This document shows positions 34,856 to 63,800 of a stretch of DNA of 64,000 bases, piece after piece. Source of the stretch: Mizuhopecten yessoensis (Eukaryota). The stretch lies in the NCBI RefSeq assembly GCF_002113885.1, contig NW_018403528.1:596433-660432 (forward strand). Direction: 5' to 3'. Under the pieces are notes generated by a model. It made no database searches and was not told the DNA's origin. It saw only the letters and a list, made by a program, of their open reading frames with translations. The translations under genes were made by a program, and so were the position numbers. Every line of letters begins with the position of its first letter. The stretch's first letter is position 1.

Positions 34856-42154
<7,299 letters not shown>

Positions 42155-52060: not shown

Positions 52061-52884
52061 AAACCTAAAATACTTTAAAACAAAGAACAGAACTGTCGCG
52101 AAAATACATATTCCCGACAATTAAGCTATTCGCAGTAAATGCATAATCTTTGCTTTCACTTAAAAGAATAATGTTTGACGTCCACAATCGATGTAATTAA
52201 TTATGTTGAGCTATGCATTTTATTGGTCAATGTAAGTGATATTGTTGATCCTTGTAATATATTTTTTTGATCCATATTTTTTTGATCCATGTAATATATT
52301 TTCTTGATCCATGTAATAGATTTTCTTGATCTATGTAGATTAATTCAAAATGAGAAAACCTGTTTTGTCTTTCATTTTTTTCCACCAAACTCATGAAATA
52401 CAAAAAGAAAACAATGCAGAAATTTCGATTTTTATTGATTACAAAAAATCATCTAAAAAATCTGCTTGGAAAGCTTCGTTGTTGAGGTGGGTAAAATAAA
52501 GATATTGTTCATAAAGATACATCATTATTATAAACATGAACATGGATTTCAGTCGCCATTTCGGGAAGACCTTGGGTACACCAAGAATTGAAATCACATG
52601 ACAGCTCCACCGTTGGATCATGAGAACAGGGTGTGTATTGCACAGTTATCAAAGCGGAAATGTTTGACAAACTTTTGGTTGAGTTAAACATGCATTGTAC
52701 CTTTTACGATTACCATTCCTCACAAAACACGTCGTTTGGTGTAAGGAAGAAACCTGCTACATATGTATACAGCTATTACGCTTGATGTAATGAAAAGATT
52801 TGAGACTTGATAAGATTTGATGATTCGGGAATGAAAATAGATGTAGCATACGAACATTTCTAACATGAAATTTCACACGAGAAA

Positions 52885-52890
52885 TTTATT
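52885..52890 (-). promoter_or_regulatory. Candidate poly(A) signal of the calmodulin-like gene
   Basis: AATAAA on - strand ~205 nt after the stop at 53095. Confidence 0.55.
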
Positions 52891-53094
52891 GAACAAAATC
52901 CCTTAATTGGGACGAATAACAGGCAGAATATTTCGTTAATATAAATATCACGTAACGAAGGTGCTACCCATCTACGGGGATCACATCAGTTTTCAAGGTT
53001 TATTGGGGCGTAATTATAAACTAGAACTGATCATGATATCAGTTCAGGTTTTGTTGTTTGTATTGGTTGATAATTTGTTTTCGTCCGTTGAGCT

Positions 53095-54374
53095 TCAAAT
53101 AGACGCAGTATCGCTTTTCACGCTTCCCTTCGAGTCTGTTCTTTTGAACATTTTTGTCTCAGGTTTTATATTTCCCTTTGAATTTCTTCTTGTTTGGGGT
53201 TTCCCATCACTTTTTATGCTTCCATCAGAGTCTGTTCTTTTGAACATTTTTTTCTCCGGTTTTATGTCCCCCTTTGAATTTCTTCTTGTTTGGGTTTTCC
53301 CATCACTTTTTATGCTTCCATCAGAGCCTGTTCTTTTGAATATTTTTTTCTCAGGTTTTGTGTTCCCGTCATCACTTTTTATGCTTCCTTTTGAATCGCG
53401 TCGTGTGTACGATTTAACGTCCCTTCCCTTTGAGTCGCTTCGTGTGTGCGATTTAGCGTCACTTCCCTTTGAGTCGCTTCGTGTGTGCGATTTAGCGTCG
53501 CTTCCCTTTGAGTCGCTTCGTGTGTGCGATTTAGCGTCACTTCCCTTTGAGTCGCTTCGTGTGTGCGATTTAGCGTCACTTCCCTTTGAGTCGCTTCGTG
53601 TGTGCGATTTCATGTCACTTTTCATGTTTCCCTTGGAGTCTGCTTTTATTTGCAACTTCAGGTCGCCTTTTGATTTTCCAGCAACCGATTTTGTGTTGTG
53701 TTTCGAGTCAACTTTCGGACTGGACTTCCCGTCCGATTTTGTATCACTTCCGGTGTCACTTTTTGCGCTCAACCTACTCTCTTTTTCCTTGGCATTCTTC
53801 CCGTCTGATTTTCCTTGAAGTTTAATGACCGCTTTTATGTCTCCTTGCGCGTCAGATTTTGTCTCACTCTTTGCGTCATCTTGATTTAAACTACTGTCGG
53901 ACTTAGAATCACTTTTTGTACTGTTAGATTTAGAATCACTTTTTATACTGGACCCGGCTTCTGATTTCGAGTCGCTCTTAACGTCCCTTTTCGCACCAGA
54001 TTTACCAGTTTGTTTTGCTTCGCCTTTCACGTTAGACTTGTCGTCCGTTTTGACGTCACCTTTCACGTCACTTTTTGCGGCATGTTTAGCGTCATTTTTC
54101 GAATTTGTTTTACCGTCAGATTTCGTTCCAAATTTGCCTCCAGTTTTATTACTTCCCTTTGTTTTGCTCTTCCCTTCTGATTTGCTATTACTACCCTTCG
54201 TTCCGGATTTTCCTTCGGGCTTTGCTTCACTCTTTTCTTGTGTCTTCTCGTCAGGTTTCTCGTCAACGTTATTGTCCGTTGGCGCGTCGGCATTAGCCTC
54301 CGCCTTCGATTCGTCTTGTTCCTCCCTCCCCTCCTCATCAGCATCATTGCCCCCTTCCATCATCTTTGCGAACT
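53095..54374 (-). CDS. CaM-like gene terminal exon (1280 nt; EFAKMM + ~420-aa K/S/D/G-rich tail)
   Basis: ttttaatccag|AG TTC GCA AAG ATG ATG; uninterrupted frame to TGA. Confidence 0.92.
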
Positions 54375-57300
54375 CTGGATTAAAAACCAAAACAATGCAT
54401 TACATGATCGAGTGCTCAGTTGTGATAAAAAAACAAAAACAAACTTTTCACTTTTTTAAAACTATTTTTTTTTCAGCCGCTCTACCTACTTTAGAATATA
54501 AGGTGTTACACATGGCAATCAAATAGTAAATAACACATTTCTGTCAATCATAAACAGAAGGTTGTGTTTTTGCTATAGTGCTTTGTTACTAATTTCTCGG
54601 GTTATATGTATATAAATGAAATTTTGAAGTTGGGACACCAGTCATGTTAGAGTCTGTAATGAATACGATTTACAATTTCTCTTCAATCTAGACCGACTTG
54701 GAAAAGAAAATATTCAACCGAACAATATTCTAAGTTAAGAGATTAGAAATCATTGTGATATTTTAGCAACGATCGACAGGTGGTGTCACTATTTCAGCCT
54801 GGTGCACTGGGACGAGTTTGAAATCAGCAATGGTAGGTTGTACATATAAAAGCATTTAGAAAGCATATTTTTATGTCAACCGAAGATGCTGTGTTTGTCT
54901 TGCAATGGTTAATTAATAGAACTTTAAAGAAGAAAAAGAAGCTATATTGTTGTTTCATAGATTATAAGAAAGCTTTCGTTTTTATTAACAGACAGGATGT
55001 ATGGTTTAAACTAACTAAGGAAGGAGAAGAAGGAAAATTGTTTGATTCAATACGTTCTTTTAATAACGTATATAATGTTGTGTTTAATTCAACAACTCAA
55101 TGTATACTTTCTTCGAATGCAGGAACGGTTTGTTCCAAGCCGAAATATTATCACCGATTTTATTTTCTCTTTATGTGAATGATTGTGACATGCATGTTTT
55201 AACTGATAAGTGTCCTTCTACAGAACTCCAAACAATTAACTTATTTCTTCTAATGTACAGTACGCAGATCATATAGTTTTGTTAGCTGAATCGGTAGAGG
55301 GATTGCAGGTATTGTTGGACACATTGTTACAATACACTAAAAAATGGAATTTAACTGTTAATGTTGAAAAAAACTAAAGTCATGATTTTTAGAAATGGTG
55401 GTAAGTTGAAGGAGGTAGACGAATGGTTTTATGATGGTAATGTTTAAGAAAATGTTGACAGTTTTAGCTACCAAGGTAGGAAAGCACTATATGCTGTATT
55501 CAATGTTTGTAAAAAGAAATATTTTGATATTGAAACACAATTTAGCGTTTTTGATACTTTTTGTGTGCAGTGTCCTAAACGAAGGAGCTGACGTTCACAA
55601 AGCTCCAGATATTGAAAAAGTGCAGTTGAATTTTTGTAAACGAATTTTGGATGACGAGAAAAACACACCTAATGTTATGATTGATCAAGAGTTAGGGAGA
55701 CTTCCTTTACATATACAATTAGAAAATTCAGATTTTTTAAATATTGGCTTAAACTTAGAATTTCGGATAATTGCATTTTAAAGGCTTGTTACGATGAGAT
55801 GATTGAAAAGGGCAGCGACTGGACAAATAACATAAGAAATGAATTGTATAGGTTAGGTTTGGGACCTTTATGGCTAACAGAAGGTAATGAAGGTCAAATT
55901 CTGAATATTATTAAATGTAGAATGCATTACATTTTTCAACAGGAGTGTCTAGATTTAATTAATTCATCTGCTAAGTGTTCTCTTTATAAATGGATCTGTG
56001 GTATTTTTTGTCTTAAACAGTATTTAATTGAACCTATTGGATTACAAAATATATAAAAAATTGCTAAAAGTTCGGTTGTCATCGCATACGTTGAATATTG
56101 AAACGGGTAGATTTCATGGTTTAGAGAGAAAAGCTAGAATTTGTATATATTGTAACACTGGCGATATTGAAGACGAATATCATTTTATTATTAGATGTAG
56201 TCATTATACTGATTTAAGTAACCGTTTCATTAAAAAATATTATCATGTAAAAACTAAAATATGAAAACATGAAAAGAATAAAGAACTGTCTATGTTCGCA
56301 AAATATCTGAGCCAAAGTCGAAAAATGAGATGCAATACTGTTTAAGGTGAAAGGAATCACTCCCTACACTGTCGCTGTAGTTCTATCATGTAGGCATGGT
56401 CGGAGTGTTGTATACTTTGTTTGTAATAAAGGTAATAAAGAATGAATGAATGAATGAAAAAAAGCTACGCTTTATACACCAATCTCAATAGAACCTTCAG
56501 TTCAGCACTGGGACTGTACTATTGCTTTGCGCATGTCAACATGATTGACGTCATCAAAACTACTAGAAATACTGAACGGGTATCCAGCTGTGTGGAAAAT
56601 TGTCTCAAAATGGGACAGAAAACGATATCAGGATTTATTTTTGTAAACAATATGAATTAATATGTAATCAAATTGGAAATCACGTAAGGTGAAAGACTAA
56701 TGAAACATTGCGCGCTAACAAGAGTGATTAATAAACATTATAATTTGAAAAAAAAACCTTGTTCCATAAATAAAGTTATATTTAGGTACGATGAAAGACT
56801 GGCTTGACATGACGTCATACGTACCTTCATATTGTATGACGTTGTCGTGGTTTTTGTCGAACTGTTCCATTATATCTTCTACGCTTGATATGCCAAGTTT
56901 TTCACCCATAGCGGTTACGACCTCCGCGAGCTCGTCTCGTGTCAGAAATCCGTCCCTGTTTTTGTCAAACTTCCTGAACACTTTTTGAATCTCTGATTCA
57001 TCGTCTGATAACTTCTTTCTCTTTACTGTAATCACCACCATCTCCTCAAACGTCACCTTGCCGTCACCTGTGGACGAAACATCAACGTTACCACGTGTTC
57101 GTAAGGGCGTCACGAAGGACGAACCGTGCAATTTTAAAATGGCAGTTTTAAAAATGACCATTTATAGAATGTTAACTTCATACTATACTGTAAAAATGGA
57201 AATTTCCGCAGTGTGGAAATGTTTGCACTTTTCGCGATGAGTAACTCCGCGCGAAAACATTCACACGCGAATATATATTTATAGGTGACATGACTTATAG

Positions 57301-60300
57301 ACATATAAATGAAGTAAATAGAGATTTCTGAATCATTATCAACGCAAAATGTCCACACCGCAATCTGTTTAGACAGACGTAACACGAACATTTTTTCCAC
57401 ACCTTGTTTTAACTCCTCCTCTGCCCTTACCGTTGACGTCGTGAAGTTTAAGCAGAGCCTCGGCCTCGCCCTCCGCCGGGGACTGGCTGATACATTGTAG
57501 AGCCCTAGCGAAGTCCTCCACTATCAGGTAGCCTCTGTTGGTCTTGTCGAAAAACTTGAATACGTCACGGTACACTGCAATGAAATCATGTTAATCGTAA
57601 CTACAAAAATAAATCACATAAAATAAAATATTCACAATTGCAATCGCTTAAAAGTCACAACATATCCCAAACCCCGTATAACCACCTAACTATGTCGTAT
57701 CCTAGATACTACAGGGGGTTAGACCGTAACCATCCCCGATATCCAGGGGTAACGTTCACTTTCCCTTTGCATGTGCAGAGAGCGAAAGTGAGCGTAACCC
57801 CTGGATATCGAGGATGACCATAGCCGAAAAGACAGATATAAGCGAGGTAACTCTGGCAAAAACACATATGTCTCCACTGAACGCATGAGAGAACTTCACT
57901 GTAGTTTTCAGTCACACAATAATAATAATACTCTCTTTATTTCGATCTGGATATAAATTTAGCGGGTAAGGACACCGAATCCCGGTTTGACCAAATGCAT
58001 TTTAACCAAAAACCCTCTTTCTTTTTGTCTTATAAGGAAAATACTTTTTTTTTTTTTTTTTTTAAATTCCGCAATATGTTGGTTTCTTTAAAAAACATAT
58101 TTTTTTTCTCTCAAATTCATGGTTACAGAGAAACAAATCGGCTCATTAAAATCTCAATAGAATCACACCAGCCAGTCCTAAACACATTCACTACCAAATA
58201 AACGTATTTTACTAAAACGTTTCGGTACACACTGGAAACTAACTAATCCGACATCGAAGAGAAAATACGGGTTTCTGAATGCTTAATCAATACATAAACT
58301 GGAAAAAAATCAATGACGCTTTGTCCTTTTTTTTAAACCCGTGCTTTTTTTTAAATTCCGGGAACCTTTTTTTTGGAGTGTCTTGATTAAAGACATTCTT
58401 CTACATGAATATGTAAGTACACTGTACTTGTTTGTGCTGAAGGTAATAATTCTTTAATATGTATGTGTAAAGGTATTTAACTGTGTAATTGACTGGTAGG
58501 GGTAGGTAGGACATTTTAAGGTAGAGAGTCCAAGTGTTCTGTCCGGTGTATCTTCTACGAAGAAAAGTTCTAATTTGTTCGACTTTTTTTGCTTGAAGTT
58601 GTTGCTTGACGATTTATGAGCCAGTAGACCCCTCCTAACCCAGAGATGACGAATGTGTCACCCTGACAATCTTTTATTACATTTTTTCCTGCAAAATTAT
58701 AATTCGCTAAGTAAGTTTGAGTTGTACTTGATTGCTACCACAATAGCCCCTTAGACCTACCGGACATCTTTTGAATAGTTTTCGGCAGTATTTCGGACAA
58801 AACACAACCCTCTTTACAGTTAGCAGCCCCCTCATTGCCTGTTTCGTTGACTTTGCTGTCGTTTTAGATTGCTTGTAAGCTATTTCGTCCAGTGAATTGT
58901 GTCGGACGCCATCTTTGCTGTTATGAAGAGAGATTCTTGTTTGAGTTGTCTCCCATCGCACGTGCTTCTATAGACCCCGGCAGAGCGGGGTTTATAGAAA
59001 TATAGACCCCGGCAAGATGTCCAATCAGAAAGAGTGTTTAAAATTAGAAGGGTGACACATATATATATTGATATTTAGCCATCTTATGATGTATATGTTT
59101 TATTAAATTGTAAGGAAAGGGTGATTATAATGTTTATGTAACTTGTGCCATATCCTCTTGCTTACAATATGTTTAAACCACCTACTTCATGTTCTTCCTG
59201 GTGGTGTTTTCAACTATAATTTATCTCCATATGAACTGGAGGACTTTAGAATAAAATCCATTGTTATTATTACTAAAATTCCTCAACACAGTGGTATTAT
59301 GTAATTTATCCTTAATTAATTGAATGTTGTATATACTGAGAGATATGTATGTGACTACCATTTTACAGTGTGTGTACCTCACGCTTCAGCAAGATTAATA
59401 CATGAAATACATATATTTCTGTATTCATATTAGTAGGCAAGCATTTCCTGCGTCTTTCCTGTTATACCATTGCACAATTAGGCTGCATGATTATTGCAAC
59501 TTATTACCATTCATAAAATCGTTTGCATTGTATGAATTAATCTTGTGATATGTTTTACTACAACTGAAATCATTGCTTAGTTGCTCTGTTTGTTTAAGTT
59601 AATTATTATATTGTATGTTGTGTATTTCACACCACTGTATGACTTCGTGCAACGGGTTCTACTCAATGTATGATTGTATTGTAAGACTTATGTAACAGTA
59701 ATACTGTCTATAATAATGCTGTATAATTTATTATGTGATGCTTGTAATACTGTTTATTACAATGTTGTATGATTGCTTAGTACGAGAAGTGAATTACTGT
59801 CTATACTATTATATGATAATGTAGTTTGAGGAGTGTAAATATGTCTATTATATCAATGTGTGATTTAATGTGTGATGAGTGTTTTACTGTTATCACCGTA
59901 TAATGACTGTAATAGTACCTTATAGTATCATTGTGTTGTGTTTATAGTACTTTATGGTATGATGCGTGTACTATTAGTATTCTCTTATGTGTGTGTGTGT
60001 GTATGTCGTGTCACTATGTAAGGGTGTGACCATGAGTGTGAATGCATTTTTTTCTCTTTCAATAGTGTTGAATTGTACGTGTATTGTTCGTTATTTCTGT
60101 AACTCTTCATGTTTGGAGGAAATAAAGGAAATAATGATATAAAGCAAAGAGTTAAACAATAATGAAATTCAACGTACAGGTAAGTCTTATTTCATTCTTG
60201 AATTGCAATTCACTTTTCACAAAAAAAACTTTACCGGGGATTCAAACAAGGAGCTTACTCACTACCCTACTGAACATGGTATTTGTTATGTTAGTACTTT

Positions 60301-60809
60301 ACGCAACATTACTGATAACGGTTTCGAAATGTTAAAAAAATTCCTGAAAAGACCCGTCAACTACATAGTTTAGTTGTTTCTGTATATAACATAAATTGAA
60401 CAGGAAAATAACTTGTTAATGGCTCTTTACGGTAAAAGTGACGGGACTCTCGTACTTATAAGTTAACGTTCTGTCAGTATAATGTGACCGGATTGAATAC
60501 CCGGTACTAGGGTAATATGCTGGGTGCTTTCGGCTTGTATTTCGGGTGAGATAGCACTCTAATGTAGGCATCAGATCTTGGCTATCACAAGCAGGCAAAC
60601 ATACCAACATATCGCCTCCTGGACACATACATCACACAAATAAAGGCACGCCAGCTTTTAATAGCACGTTAAGAAATTAAACGTAACAAAACCAAACCAT
60701 AATACACACCAGAAGAAGAAGAGGAAGCAGAAGAAATTCACTTACTGTCTATTTCCGCCTTCTGTAGAGATGAAAACACTTTCTTGTAGCGTACATACTT
60801 GTTGGATGC
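53095..60809 (-). CDS. Calmodulin-like EF-hand protein with long charged C-terminal tail, 5'-partial, >=576 aa: complement(join(53095..54374,56825..57067,57431..57574,60746..60809))
   Basis: Four exons with GT-AG boundaries and compatible phases give one open frame: ASNKYVRYKKVFSSLQKAEID-MYRDVFKFFDKTNRG...DVNGDGKVTFEE...DKNRDGFLTRDE...DKNHDNVIQYEEFAKMM + tail. The 144 and 243 nt exons equal CaM exons 3 and 4 in size. Confidence 0.92.
53110..53620 (-). repeat. Coding tandem repeats: 39-bp x6 (~53385-53620) and 96-bp x~2.7 (~53110-53385)
   Basis: Encode SDAKSHTRSDSKG and KPEKKMFKRTDSDGSIKSDGKPQTRRNSKGNI units. Confidence 0.93.
54850..56456 (+). mobile_element. 5'-truncated decayed LINE (RTE-X-like) in the last intron of the CaM-like gene, antisense to it
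   Basis: LYCCFIDYKKAF, YADHIVLLAES, IEKVQLNFCKRIL, ELGRLPL, RLSSHTLNIETGRF..CIYC..IEDEYHF motifs; ends in aataaa plus (gaat)n tail. Confidence 0.93.
56825..57067 (-). CDS. CaM-like gene exon (243 nt, EF2 exit to EF4 loop)
   Basis: ccacag|GT GAC GGC AAG...TAT GAA G|gtacgt. Confidence 0.95.
57431..57574 (-). CDS. CaM-like gene exon (144 nt, EF1 to EF2 loop)
   Basis: ttgcag|TG TAC CGT GAC...GTC AAC G|gtaagg. Confidence 0.95.
57731..57816. mobile_element. 86-bp hairpin MITE
   Basis: Arms catccccgatatccaggggtaacgttcacttt / aaagtgagcgtaacccctggatatcgaggatg. Confidence 0.75.
58653..59060. mobile_element. Probable MITE (~408 bp) with internal hairpin
   Basis: 12-bp TIRs atgtgtcaccct / agggtgacacat; internal stem ttctatagacccc / ggggtttatagaa at 58966-58999. 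Confidence 0.55.
60470..60700 (+). mobile_element. Degenerate SINE (Meta-like family)
   Basis: tgtcagtataatgtgaccgg...agcactctaatgtaggcatcag core and aaaaccaaacc tail. Confidence 0.55.
60746..60809 (-). CDS. CaM-like gene exon (64 nt; ASNKYVRYKKVFSSLQKAEID + A), counterpart of CaM exon 2
   Basis: ttccttttggcag|GCA TCC...GAC A|gtaagt; phase 0 in, phase 1 out, as in CaM exon 2. Confidence 0.82.
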
Positions 60810-63800
60810 CTGCCAAAAGGAAGAAATCATATTCGTGAAATCAAAACCTGGTGTTGATTACAAAATAACGTTCGCCTTTCTCAGTCGCGACTAGATTATG
60901 AGTATTCCTCGAAGACTGTCGGGGGGTTGTCACATGTCCTGTTTTGTTTGTGTAAGCACGGAATCTTAGTCCGTAGTCCGTGTTGTTATCTAAGTAAAGG
61001 TTATCGTCTAAGTAAAGCTAAGTCGTGTAAGCTGCTTGGCGTCTATAGGACGGTTCAAATCACACTTTCAGCTCGTGTTTTGTTGTGGGCAATTAACACT
61101 TTTGTTGCTAATTTCATTTGATCAGGAGTGTCACAGAATTAGATTAGTAGACAACTCAGAATATGTCATTTAAATCGTGGAAGGTGAGAGCTCCACCTTG
61201 GTGGATGTGGAGTCCGGAGTCCCCCAGAAGTCCATGGTAGTATATAGTCAATAAATACAAAAATGGAAGTCTCTTATAAAAAAATAACACTTTGTTAGGA
61301 TGTATGATTAATCTTTGACATGAATACGTAGATTGATGTTACTTTCGACGATACGGGGGAATTAAATATTTAGCTCCATTTTGGCACTAAACAGGTAAAA
61401 AGTGTTCACTTGTCGTTCGGGCTGTCATTCCATAAGTCATTAGATAATCTAGACCGTGTTAATTTCAGTATGCGACTCATCTTTGCATTGCTAAATCTAT
61501 CATTTAAATAACAAGTGACGGATTTTGGGAAACTCATGATGACTGTTTATTTTTTTCATGATCAGACAATAAAACAGCATTTGCATATTAATGAACCTAA
61601 ATGCAATATGAGAAATAGTGAAAAAAATCCTAGTAGAATCATATTAAGATAATTGAAAAACATATACAAAGAAAAATATATAACAAATAAACGATAGCAG
61701 AATATATTGCTGCCAGTCAAAAATTTTAAAGCGACCAACGATCTACGTTAATCAACAGCTGCAAATCTGAATGATAAGACTGAGAAAATTCAATTGATCG
61801 AGGGAGATAATTCTGGCACAGTTCACAAAACATTGTGTAGAAATACAGCATATACCCTTAACCCTATTATAAATCACCAGGATACTTTATAAGGTAGCGT
61901 GTAACGTTCACTCCAACACAAATCAAGTGTTTAATATGAAAGGTAGCATACACCCTTAACCCTAATACAAATAGCATACATAGTGTAATTGCAGGCTGTG
62001 ATAATCTCCCCCTATCATACCACGCATAATACTGATACCTCTATATGAGCCCGAGGGACGGCTGGCCCGAAGGCTTATATCGGTCGCTGGAGCATCCCAA
62101 CGAGGTGGCCCGAAGGCTTATATGGGTCGCTGGAGCATCCCGACGAGGCGACTAACGTGCAGCGCTAAAGGATTTGACGAGGTCATGCATCAGGTTTTCA
62201 TCTTCGAAGTGAAATAATATTTCGGTATGATACTGTCACATGTGGACATCGTCAGTCATGTGACACGGCCATTATTTTCTCTTTTCAAGTATTGTGTTGA
62301 CCACGCCCGGTAGACAGTTACGTATATACTTACGTTAATCTGTAGAGGACTGAAATGTAATGAGGATTTCTAATATTATACAATGTAGTGTAACGGGTTT
62401 AGCCGTGACGTAATTTTAAGGCGATACTATAAGGAGAGAGCTGACAACAAGTCTGTTACGAATGGTTGACATGACCCTTTCAACGAATAGGATAAACAAT
62501 TATGAAACAAGTCATTTGCCCCGATGGTAGCACGCAGACAGATTAAGGTCTATGTAGACGTTTTGTTAGAAAATAAATGTATTGACCTTTCATGCACTTA
62601 CATTGAATATCTTCATTTGGGCAATTTATCTAATGAATCTGACATTTTTTTTCAATCCCGGAGCTCTTTTGTGAAAAAAAACCCATCAATAACATCAATG
62701 ACGCATACATACTATTATTTACTGTGGTCGCTTTGAATCAACAAGTTGGGAAATTAATTTCACGAAGTGGTGTTGATATCGGCTTCTAAAATCCGTAAAA
62801 CGAAAGTCGTACAACTGTTGTCATAGCGTCGAGAGAACGTGCCTTTTCTGTTTAAATCCATCGAGAAAAATATAAATATTGATTCAATGGGTTAAATTTG
62901 TTTGAAAACAATATAATTTCATTTGGTTTGAAAGGAAAACGATAACATGATTGTGCAATGAAATTCCACCTGGACAACAGAAATAACCGACGCAAAGTTT
63001 ACATAACAATGTAATATATGGACAATCAATTTAATGTGTAGTAAACAGTGGAAAGTTAGGTACACAACGTATAATTACCTCCCTTTACATAGCTCTTCGG
63101 AAAGCCACTCGGCAAACACAGAACGTGCCACGTGTTTCCCCCCCCTTCATGCTAATGCACGTAGTAGACTACAGGCAAGGGAAGTTTGACTTAACAGGCA
63201 ACATTAAACATTAAGGATTGAAATAAAAATAATGAGAGAGACTGGACAAAGAATTGATTGCAAGAACTTGTAAGTAAATAGGTACATATATATCTAAATC
63301 GGGCCCTGTAATCACATCTATCTTCTTTTTACATGTTCAACATAGCGATTATTTTATCAGATTTTTACTCGATTTTTTTTCAAAGCAGACGTAGTTACTT
63401 TTATACGATAATTAGTTACATGGTAAATATAATCTAATTAAAATAGACTTGTAATTTCGCTCTACCACCAAGTGCACATTGTAGGTAGAAGAGAGAAATT
63501 GGAAGTCTCGTTTTAATTAAATAGGATAAATAGGATATATGTATCATAAAGAATTTTATGATAAAAGTGCTAAATTTGAACTTAAATTTAATATATCATT
63601 ATATTCGTTATTTGGCGTATTTTAAATTACCAACTTTTCAACTTTCATTTAATTTAATTAATATCCTGGAACTGTTTTGTGTAAATTGTTTCTCCTTATC
63701 TAATTGTGTCAATTTAAATAAGTTCTATTCACGAAGCTTTTTCTTTGAAGTCGACATGCATAATTCGTTTGAACCATTGTTGTCAAATTAACTTTTTACT

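Follow-up and report, generated by a model that had tools for sequence, protein, structure and literature searches.

The window analysed here is a stretch of 64,000 nucleotides (nt) from Mizuhopecten yessoensis (contig NW_018403528.1 of assembly GCF_002113885.1, positions 596,433 to 660,432 of the forward strand); all coordinates are counted from its first letter. Its minus strand carries, between 60809 and 53095, a gene for a calmodulin-like protein with an unusual C-terminus. A single mRNA joins the calmodulin-like head to a long low-complexity tail that is probably disordered, and this joint is supported by RNA reads. Head and tail were searched exon by exon, and the structure prediction covers the tail exon.

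Four exons with GT-AG borders were identified, three by direct reading of the sequence and exon 2 by tblastn with the N-terminus of a relative (P0018, see below). Exon 2 (60746–60809, 64 nt) codes for ASNKYVRYKKVFSSLQKAEID and the first base of a Met codon that is finished by exon A. It is bordered by the acceptor ttttggcag and the donor gtaagt. Exon A (57431–57574, 144 nt, phase 1 at both ends) is preceded by a cag acceptor before 57574 and followed by the donor gtaagg after 57431. It comprises EF-hand 1 and the start of the EF-hand 2 loop. Exon B (56825–57067, 243 nt; acceptor cag before 57067, donor gtacgt after 56825) contributes the remainder of EF-hand 2, the central linker and EF-hands 3 and 4. 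The terminal coding exon (53095–54374; acceptor cag before 54374) supplies the exiting helix of EF-hand 4 (FAKMM) and an extension of about 418 residues. It reads (E)FAKMMEGGNDADEEGREEQDESK... through 425 codons without a stop and ends with TGA at 53097–53095. Two codons are split across introns, DVN-G-DGK between exons A and B and QYE-E-FAKMM between exon B and the terminal exon. The 3' untranslated region covers at least 52900–53094 and extends below 52900: RNA depth is about 35 in 52900–53099, and record 1 of the X1 contigs reaches about 434 nt further past 52900. In total, the protein comprises at least 577 residues. An earlier sequence-only reading of this stretch had predicted the junction borders 57431/57067 and 56825/54374 and the outer bound 60809, all of which are correct by splice-site reading. 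It had also placed the N-terminus outside the window; instead, most of it lies inside, in exon 2. The initiator exon was not located by similarity. By homology, about 1–4 codons are expected of it, and in the relatives five residues including the initiator Met stand before NKYVR.

Transcription was followed in four RNA runs or contig sets (X21, X24, X1 and X2) aligned to 52900–58899. In the raw RNA-seq data of X21, depth is about 27–45 in each 200-nt bin of the tail exon and the 3' untranslated region and about 34 in the main bin of exon B. It drops to 0–1.3 across the 2.45-kb intron between them. In X21, 42 reads cross the joint 57067^57431, which X1 and X2 contigs cover as well, and 6 reads cross the joint 54374^56825, whose CT..AC ends correspond to GT..AG on the minus strand. 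Thus, both predicted junctions were read. Contigs of X1 and X2, which come from two other studies, span the tail without gaps. Eight variants were found in the tail, five synonymous and three non-synonymous, and no insertions or deletions (indels). In X24, a second RNA study, no expression was detected, which suggests that expression is restricted. An alternative short last exon was sought in 8.8 kb downstream of exon B with the pattern ag followed by E or D and F-x-x-[MLIVF][MLIVF]. The acceptor at 54374 was the sole match, and no other acceptor in this region yields the conserved E-F-x-x-M-M continuation of the EF-hand 4 helix. The two findings that would have spoken against the joined protein, a different short last exon and a silent locus, did not turn up: the transcripts use the long last exon.

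The head contains four EF-hand units in two pairs, and the 161-aa relatives align across all of them. Pfam families EF-hand_7 and EF-hand_1 were found on exon B (1.4e-15) and EF-hand_7 on exon A (6.5e-5, below the gathering cut-off). The closest PDB matches of exon B are calmodulins (1.6e-17), aligned to calmodulin residues 62–140. The full four-EF-hand module described in the sequence-only reading is present as far as the units are concerned; canonical loops are confined to EF-hands 2–4 (DVNGDGKVTFEE, DKNRDGFLTRDE and DKNHDNVIQYEE). The loop of EF-hand 3 is located at 56931–56966, that of EF-hand 4 is split by an intron (56825–56858 and 54373–54374). Loop 1 (57513–57548, DKTNRGYLIVED) is non-canonical, with Thr at position 3, Arg at position 5 and Asp at position 12. 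Because Arg occupies the coordinating position 5, EF-hand 1 probably does not bind Ca2+ by the rules established for EF-hands. All relatives have Lys or Arg at this position, so that a conserved non-binding site is probable.

A canonical calmodulin gene, whose reading includes NGTIDFPEF...GQVNYE, is located on the plus strand of the same window at 36874–39173 and onward. Both genes are arranged tail-to-tail about 12–14 kb apart and have identical intron positions: the 144-nt exon, the 243-nt exon and the last-exon acceptor at the border of E and F all correspond, and the borders of exon A match those of calmodulin exon 37372–37512. Calmodulin and the head share only 21% identity over exon A and 35% over exon B. 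A true calmodulin would combine near-identity with four canonical loops; these values and the Arg in loop 1 set the head apart from it. Because it has the same exon borders as calmodulin but low identity, the head is, judged from its sequence, a diverged calmodulin derivative.

When exon B was compared by HMMER with a full set of 1.84 billion representatives, a small set of matches well above the calmodulin level was obtained. One of them, P0018, has 161 aa and comes from transcript contigs; identity to it is 56% over exon B and 45% over exon A. P0066 originates from Tegillarca granosa, and the remaining strong matches to exon B are exon-sized open reading frames (ORFs) of environmental assemblies. 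A word search with P0018 found P0164 (162 aa), which is named 'calmodulin [Mytilus galloprovincialis]' by NCBI. In addition, the four-exon layout recurs in two genomic loci (L009 and L010), including a 64-nt exon with ag and gtaagt borders that is 71% identical in L009 and 76% in L010. The alignment to the relatives is collinear through exon 2, exon A and exon B, with identities of 47–76% in exon 2, 45–55% in exon A (P0018, L009 and L010) and 51–58% in exon B. The N-terminal exon with NKYVR followed by Phe or Tyr and the similarity well above that to calmodulin place the head, on sequence grounds, in an uncharacterised bivalve calmodulin-like subfamily descended from calmodulin. A second member was not found in the scallop genome itself, where the next paralogs are 31–38% identical. 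The relatives begin with MAAGLNKYVRF or MAGSLNKYVRF without a hydrophobic leader, and exon 2 begins with ASNKYVRY. Such a short and hydrophilic N-terminus, shared with the relatives (MA..NKYVRY..), speaks against classical secretion. The protein is presumably intracellular, because its N-terminus is hydrophilic and conserved and no leader was seen.

It is at the C-terminus that the scallop gene departs from its subfamily. All four relatives with a readable end terminate 7–8 residues past EF-hand 4, with EFEKMLMQ, EFEKMLIQ or EFMKMMAD before the stop codon or, in L009, with (E)FAKMLNLR behind the conserved acceptor. The last exon of L009 opens with nearly the same 14 bases, AGTT(T/C)GC(G/A)AAGATG. 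Behind this acceptor, the scallop gene reads (E)FAKMMEGGND... and goes on for 418 more codons. This means, the short end typical of the subfamily (about 161 aa in total) is missing and 425 codons follow the last intron. Because the relatives stop 7–8 residues past EF-hand 4, the tail appears to be an extension that arose when the ancestral stop was lost. Taken together, we regard it as likely that the gene model is correct and that the tail is a lineage-specific stop-loss extension. Such a gene is prone to be truncated or split by automatic annotation, and the RNA evidence now supports the gene model.

The tail is rich in Lys (19.8%), Ser (18.1%), Asp (12.0%) and Gly (9.4%), and hydrophobic and aromatic residues account for 8.9%. 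Its grand average of hydropathy (GRAVY) is -1.67, its fraction of charged residues 0.41, its net charge +30 and its isoelectric point (pI) 9.7. The sequence-only reading had distinguished an acidic stretch, a K/S/D polyampholyte and basic repeats within one exon, and all three zones are real. The acidic start (54238–54357, EGGNDADEEGREEQDESKAEANADAPTDNNVDEKPDEK...) is reflected in a net charge of -10 and a pI of 4.1 for residues 1–40 of the terminal exon. It is followed at 53611–54237 by a region of degenerate K-x-x-x tetrapeptides (KSDG, KGDV, KTDD, KSDS and others), a well-mixed polyampholyte in which 44 of 83 Lys-Lys gaps are exactly 4 and kappa is about 0.09–0.10. Here, Tandem Repeats Finder (TRF) detected periods of 12, 17 and 27 nt. 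The C-terminal third is occupied by two arrays. One (53384–53610) consists of 5.8 copies of a 39-nt unit with 95% matches in TRF that encodes the 13-aa unit KSHTRSDSKGSDA with an R-x-x-S in each unit. The other (53110–53359) consists of 2.6 copies of a 96-nt unit with 90% matches, whose 32-aa units contain KPEKKMFKRTDSDGS and TRRNSKG with an R-R-x-S site. The tail has 11 R-x-x-S sites, mostly from these two arrays, and three R-R-x-S sites, all from the arrays. Over 1275 nt, not a single in-frame stop was found, whereas the other two frames of the same strand contain 17 and 53. Composition-matched shuffles had on average 18–23 stops, and none of 2000 was stop-free.

Separate similarity searches for the two parts, which the sequence-only reading had proposed, gave different outcomes: the head matches bivalve calmodulin-like proteins, and for the tail no relatives were detected. 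No Pfam family, cylicin included, was found on the tail at E up to 1. Word searches with the whole exon and with its first 110 residues were negative too, and a feature search of the ESM Atlas gave no usable match; low-complexity words saturate the word index. Within the scallop genome, the tail sequence is single-copy. AlphaFold2, run on the tail exon as a single sequence, predicted no secondary structure and gave a mean predicted local distance difference test (pLDDT) score of 42.5. The low hydrophobic content, a kappa of about 0.10 and this pLDDT are consistent with disorder and no proof of it, so that the tail is probably disordered. A Ca2+ sensor head and a charged, probably disordered tail in one protein, as proposed from the sequence, is therefore an architecture that stood up; the putative roles in shell, sperm, cilia or condensates proposed with it are based on composition.

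With the ancestral stop lost, the same terminal exon reads on for about 418 residues. The added sequence probably grew from a 12-nt unit encoding Lys-x-x-x and, more recently, from the 39-nt and 96-nt units. From these data, we infer Ca2+ binding, localization and a possible role of the tail as follows. The head, that is the first approximately 150 residues, would sense Ca2+ in the cytoplasm or nucleus through three putative sites and would grip its targets in the manner of calmodulin-like proteins. The tail would be an extended, well-mixed and net-basic (+30) polyampholyte with 11 kinase-type R-x-x-S sites. As a flexible tether or scaffold tunable by phosphorylation, it could either multimerise the sensor or keep it attached to polyanionic surfaces, for example nucleic acids, tubulin tails or acidic membranes. 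This tether or scaffold role is a tentative proposal that we hold with much less confidence than the gene model and the origin of the tail.

Several points weigh against this interpretation. At the level of the transcript, the tail junction is covered by 6 reads with 3 start points from one run, compared to 42 for the junction next to it. Coverage dips on either side of the exon B/tail junction, and no contig of X1 or X2 bridges it. The dip is attributed to partial read alignment across the 2.45-kb gap. A minor alternative 3' exon outside 52900–58899 may exist, since the loose read ends listed were those with more than a few reads. X24 is silent. The protein itself is known from genome sequence and RNA only. 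At the level of the tail, the open frame may have been inherited from stop-free repeat units, for which the shuffles do not control. The repeats are 90–95% identical and hence young, and 3 of the 8 variants change residues. The lack of tail homologues is weak evidence, as this genome and possibly its near relatives seem to be missing from the protein databases. Finally, AlphaFold2 with a single sequence assigns low confidence to many real folds, too.

The main rival is a recent, tolerated accident: the tail would be a young, neutral or nearly neutral product of stop loss without a function of its own, the protein would be made and either kept or quickly degraded, and the gene would act, if at all, via its head. 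The tail is present in no known relative, its 90–95% identical repeats imply a recent expansion, a low-complexity 12-nt period can remain open without selection, and non-synonymous variants occur among the RNA reads. However, the gene is the sole copy of the subfamily in the genome, so that a harmful appendage would be selected against. Furthermore, 1275 nt are open compared to 17 and 53 stops in the other frames, the mRNA depth of the tail equals that of the head, and no indels were found in three independent samples. A tolerated accident is thus somewhat improbable, but it is the alternative to be taken most seriously.

A role in shell formation, with head and Lys/Ser/Asp tail active at the mineralising front in the way put forward for the pearl-oyster protein CaLP, is improbable. 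The composition of Ser/Asp/Lys-rich shell-matrix proteins resembles that of the tail. By contrast, homology predicts a short, basic and hydrophilic N-terminus without a signal peptide, the head is only 21–35% identical to calmodulin, to which CaLP is much closer, and the net charge of the tail is positive, with no markedly acidic character. Equally doubtful is a cytoskeletal role in sperm or cilia by analogy with cylicins, in which the tail would be a basic, Lys-rich repeat scaffold. The Lys-rich short repeats with Asp and the net positive charge agree with the description of cylicins (PMC10684152, PMC2119631), and expression seen in one RNA study and missing from another fits tissue restriction; yet a cylicin domain is absent (no Pfam family at E up to 1) and the likeness concerns composition only. 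Least probable, and very unlikely, is that the tail exon belongs mostly to a separate or non-coding transcript unit with the joined form as a minor product: 6 against 42 junction reads, the lower depth where exon B ends and the tail exon begins and the lack of a bridging contig would fit, but the junction uses the exact acceptor conserved in the relatives, head and tail have equal depths with an intron devoid of reads, no alternative exon completes the half-finished EF-hand 4 helix, and a dip is expected from partial alignment across 2.45 kb.

Other features were noticed at the locus and elsewhere in the genome. When the tail was searched against its own genome, weak matches only were obtained (E 1e-10 and weaker), to 39-nt satellites. 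One satellite at G000:C5207:505400-511300 (loci L002 and L004–L008) comprises 83 copies of a 39-nt unit in 3.2 kb with 99% matches. It is open in one frame over 1764–1935 codons and translates as GSDVSRHTRRNRA, which resembles the 13-aa repeat at the protein level only. Its candidacy as source of this repeat was rejected: by hand count, about 17 of 39 nt agree in register, the Ser codons belong to different classes and blastn finds nothing. Opposite the tail repeats, a 285-aa ORF rich in Leu, Phe and Ser is located on the plus strand (52961–53818), a mirror of the A-rich coding repeats. It was rejected as a gene, because CT..AC intron ends show that transcription proceeds from the minus strand.

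The introns contain features, too. The one between exon 2 and exon A harbours at 57731–57816 an inverted repeat with 36-nt arms that are 89% complementary and separated by 14 nt. RNA depth at this repeat is in the thousands in the X1 and X2 contigs and about 330 in X21, and many reads jump back 33–46 nt, which means that other copies are arranged in tandem. The repeat family is highly transcribed and has no connection to the gene. Rfam had no match over 52500–61500. At 58500–58899, X1 and X2 contigs reach a depth of 12–35 and break at 58710 into unrelated sequence, while X21 has almost none; this is probably another repeat or an independent transcript. Inside the 2.45-kb intron, short ORFs antisense to the gene (54873–56264, plus strand) resemble, by eye, remnants of a retroelement, and Pfam found no family on three plus-strand ORFs in this intron. 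Contigs of X1 and X2 pile up at 55300–55499 (depth 29–56), and none are seen there in X21.

If the tail is functional, it represents a clean and datable birth of new protein sequence, by stop loss and repeat expansion, on an old conserved Ca2+ sensor without a back-up copy. If it is neutral, it shows how much disordered sequence is tolerated by a signalling protein.

Among known systems, the closest kin are the bivalve proteins of 161–162 aa (P0018, P0163, P0164 and the Tegillarca granosa fragment KAJ8308803). They share 43–56% identity over exon 2, A and B, the NKYVR extension ending in Phe or Tyr, Lys or Arg at position 5 of loop 1 and, in L009 and L010, identical exon borders. In contrast to the scallop protein with its approximately 418 further residues, they end 7–8 residues past EF-hand 4. 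Functional studies on them did not turn up in the searches. This means, the scallop protein does not belong to a well-characterised family, a prospect that the sequence-only reading had raised: its nearest relatives are labelled 'calmodulin' and unstudied. Canonical calmodulin likewise consists of four EF-hand units in two lobes, its introns lie at the same positions, and it is the closest match of solved structure. It differs by its low identity (21% and 35%), whereas the scallop protein has a degenerate EF-hand 1, an N-terminal extension and a long tail.

CaLP from the pearl oyster, a protein of 161 aa that is much closer to calmodulin, carries a tail of about a dozen residues. As in the scallop protein, the C-terminus of CaLP (Pinctada fucata), a calmodulin-like protein of a mollusc, is lengthened by a hydrophilic tail (PMC5040781). 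Unlike CaLP, the scallop head falls into another subfamily that is more divergent; this comparison follows the descriptions in the papers. Cylicins are proteins of the mammalian sperm calyx that are net basic and composed of Lys-rich short repeats (PMC10684152). The likeness is limited to this Lys-rich basic repeat character: cylicins as described have no EF-hand head, and the scallop tail has no Pfam match.

The closest architectural analogy is provided by the S100 fused-type genes, whose single large last exon contains the end of the EF-hand domain together with charged tandem repeats (PMC2668185). A large terminal exon of this kind, with the end of an EF-hand and tandem repeats, is present here at 54374–53095. 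Filaggrin, trichohyalin, hornerin and repetin likewise combine a small EF-hand head with a long charged repeat tail. In these proteins, which are confined to vertebrate skin, the head is an S100 pair and the repeats are unrelated, whereas on the scallop exons Pfam detected calmodulin-type EF-hand families only and no S100 family. The resemblance, as far as an analogy of architecture can tell, is one of convergence and not of kinship. It is a speculative and rather unlikely proposal that the scallop protein is the molluscan counterpart of these proteins, with a calmodulin-type sensor and a charged tail built by repeats from non-coding or microsatellite sequence, and that it now acts as a structural or condensate-forming scaffold controlled by Ca2+ and phosphorylation in a specialised tissue such as the shell-forming epithelium or sperm. 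If the tail is functional, an EF-hand head and a charged repeat tail in one exon, as known from the vertebrate skin proteins, would have been invented independently a second time.

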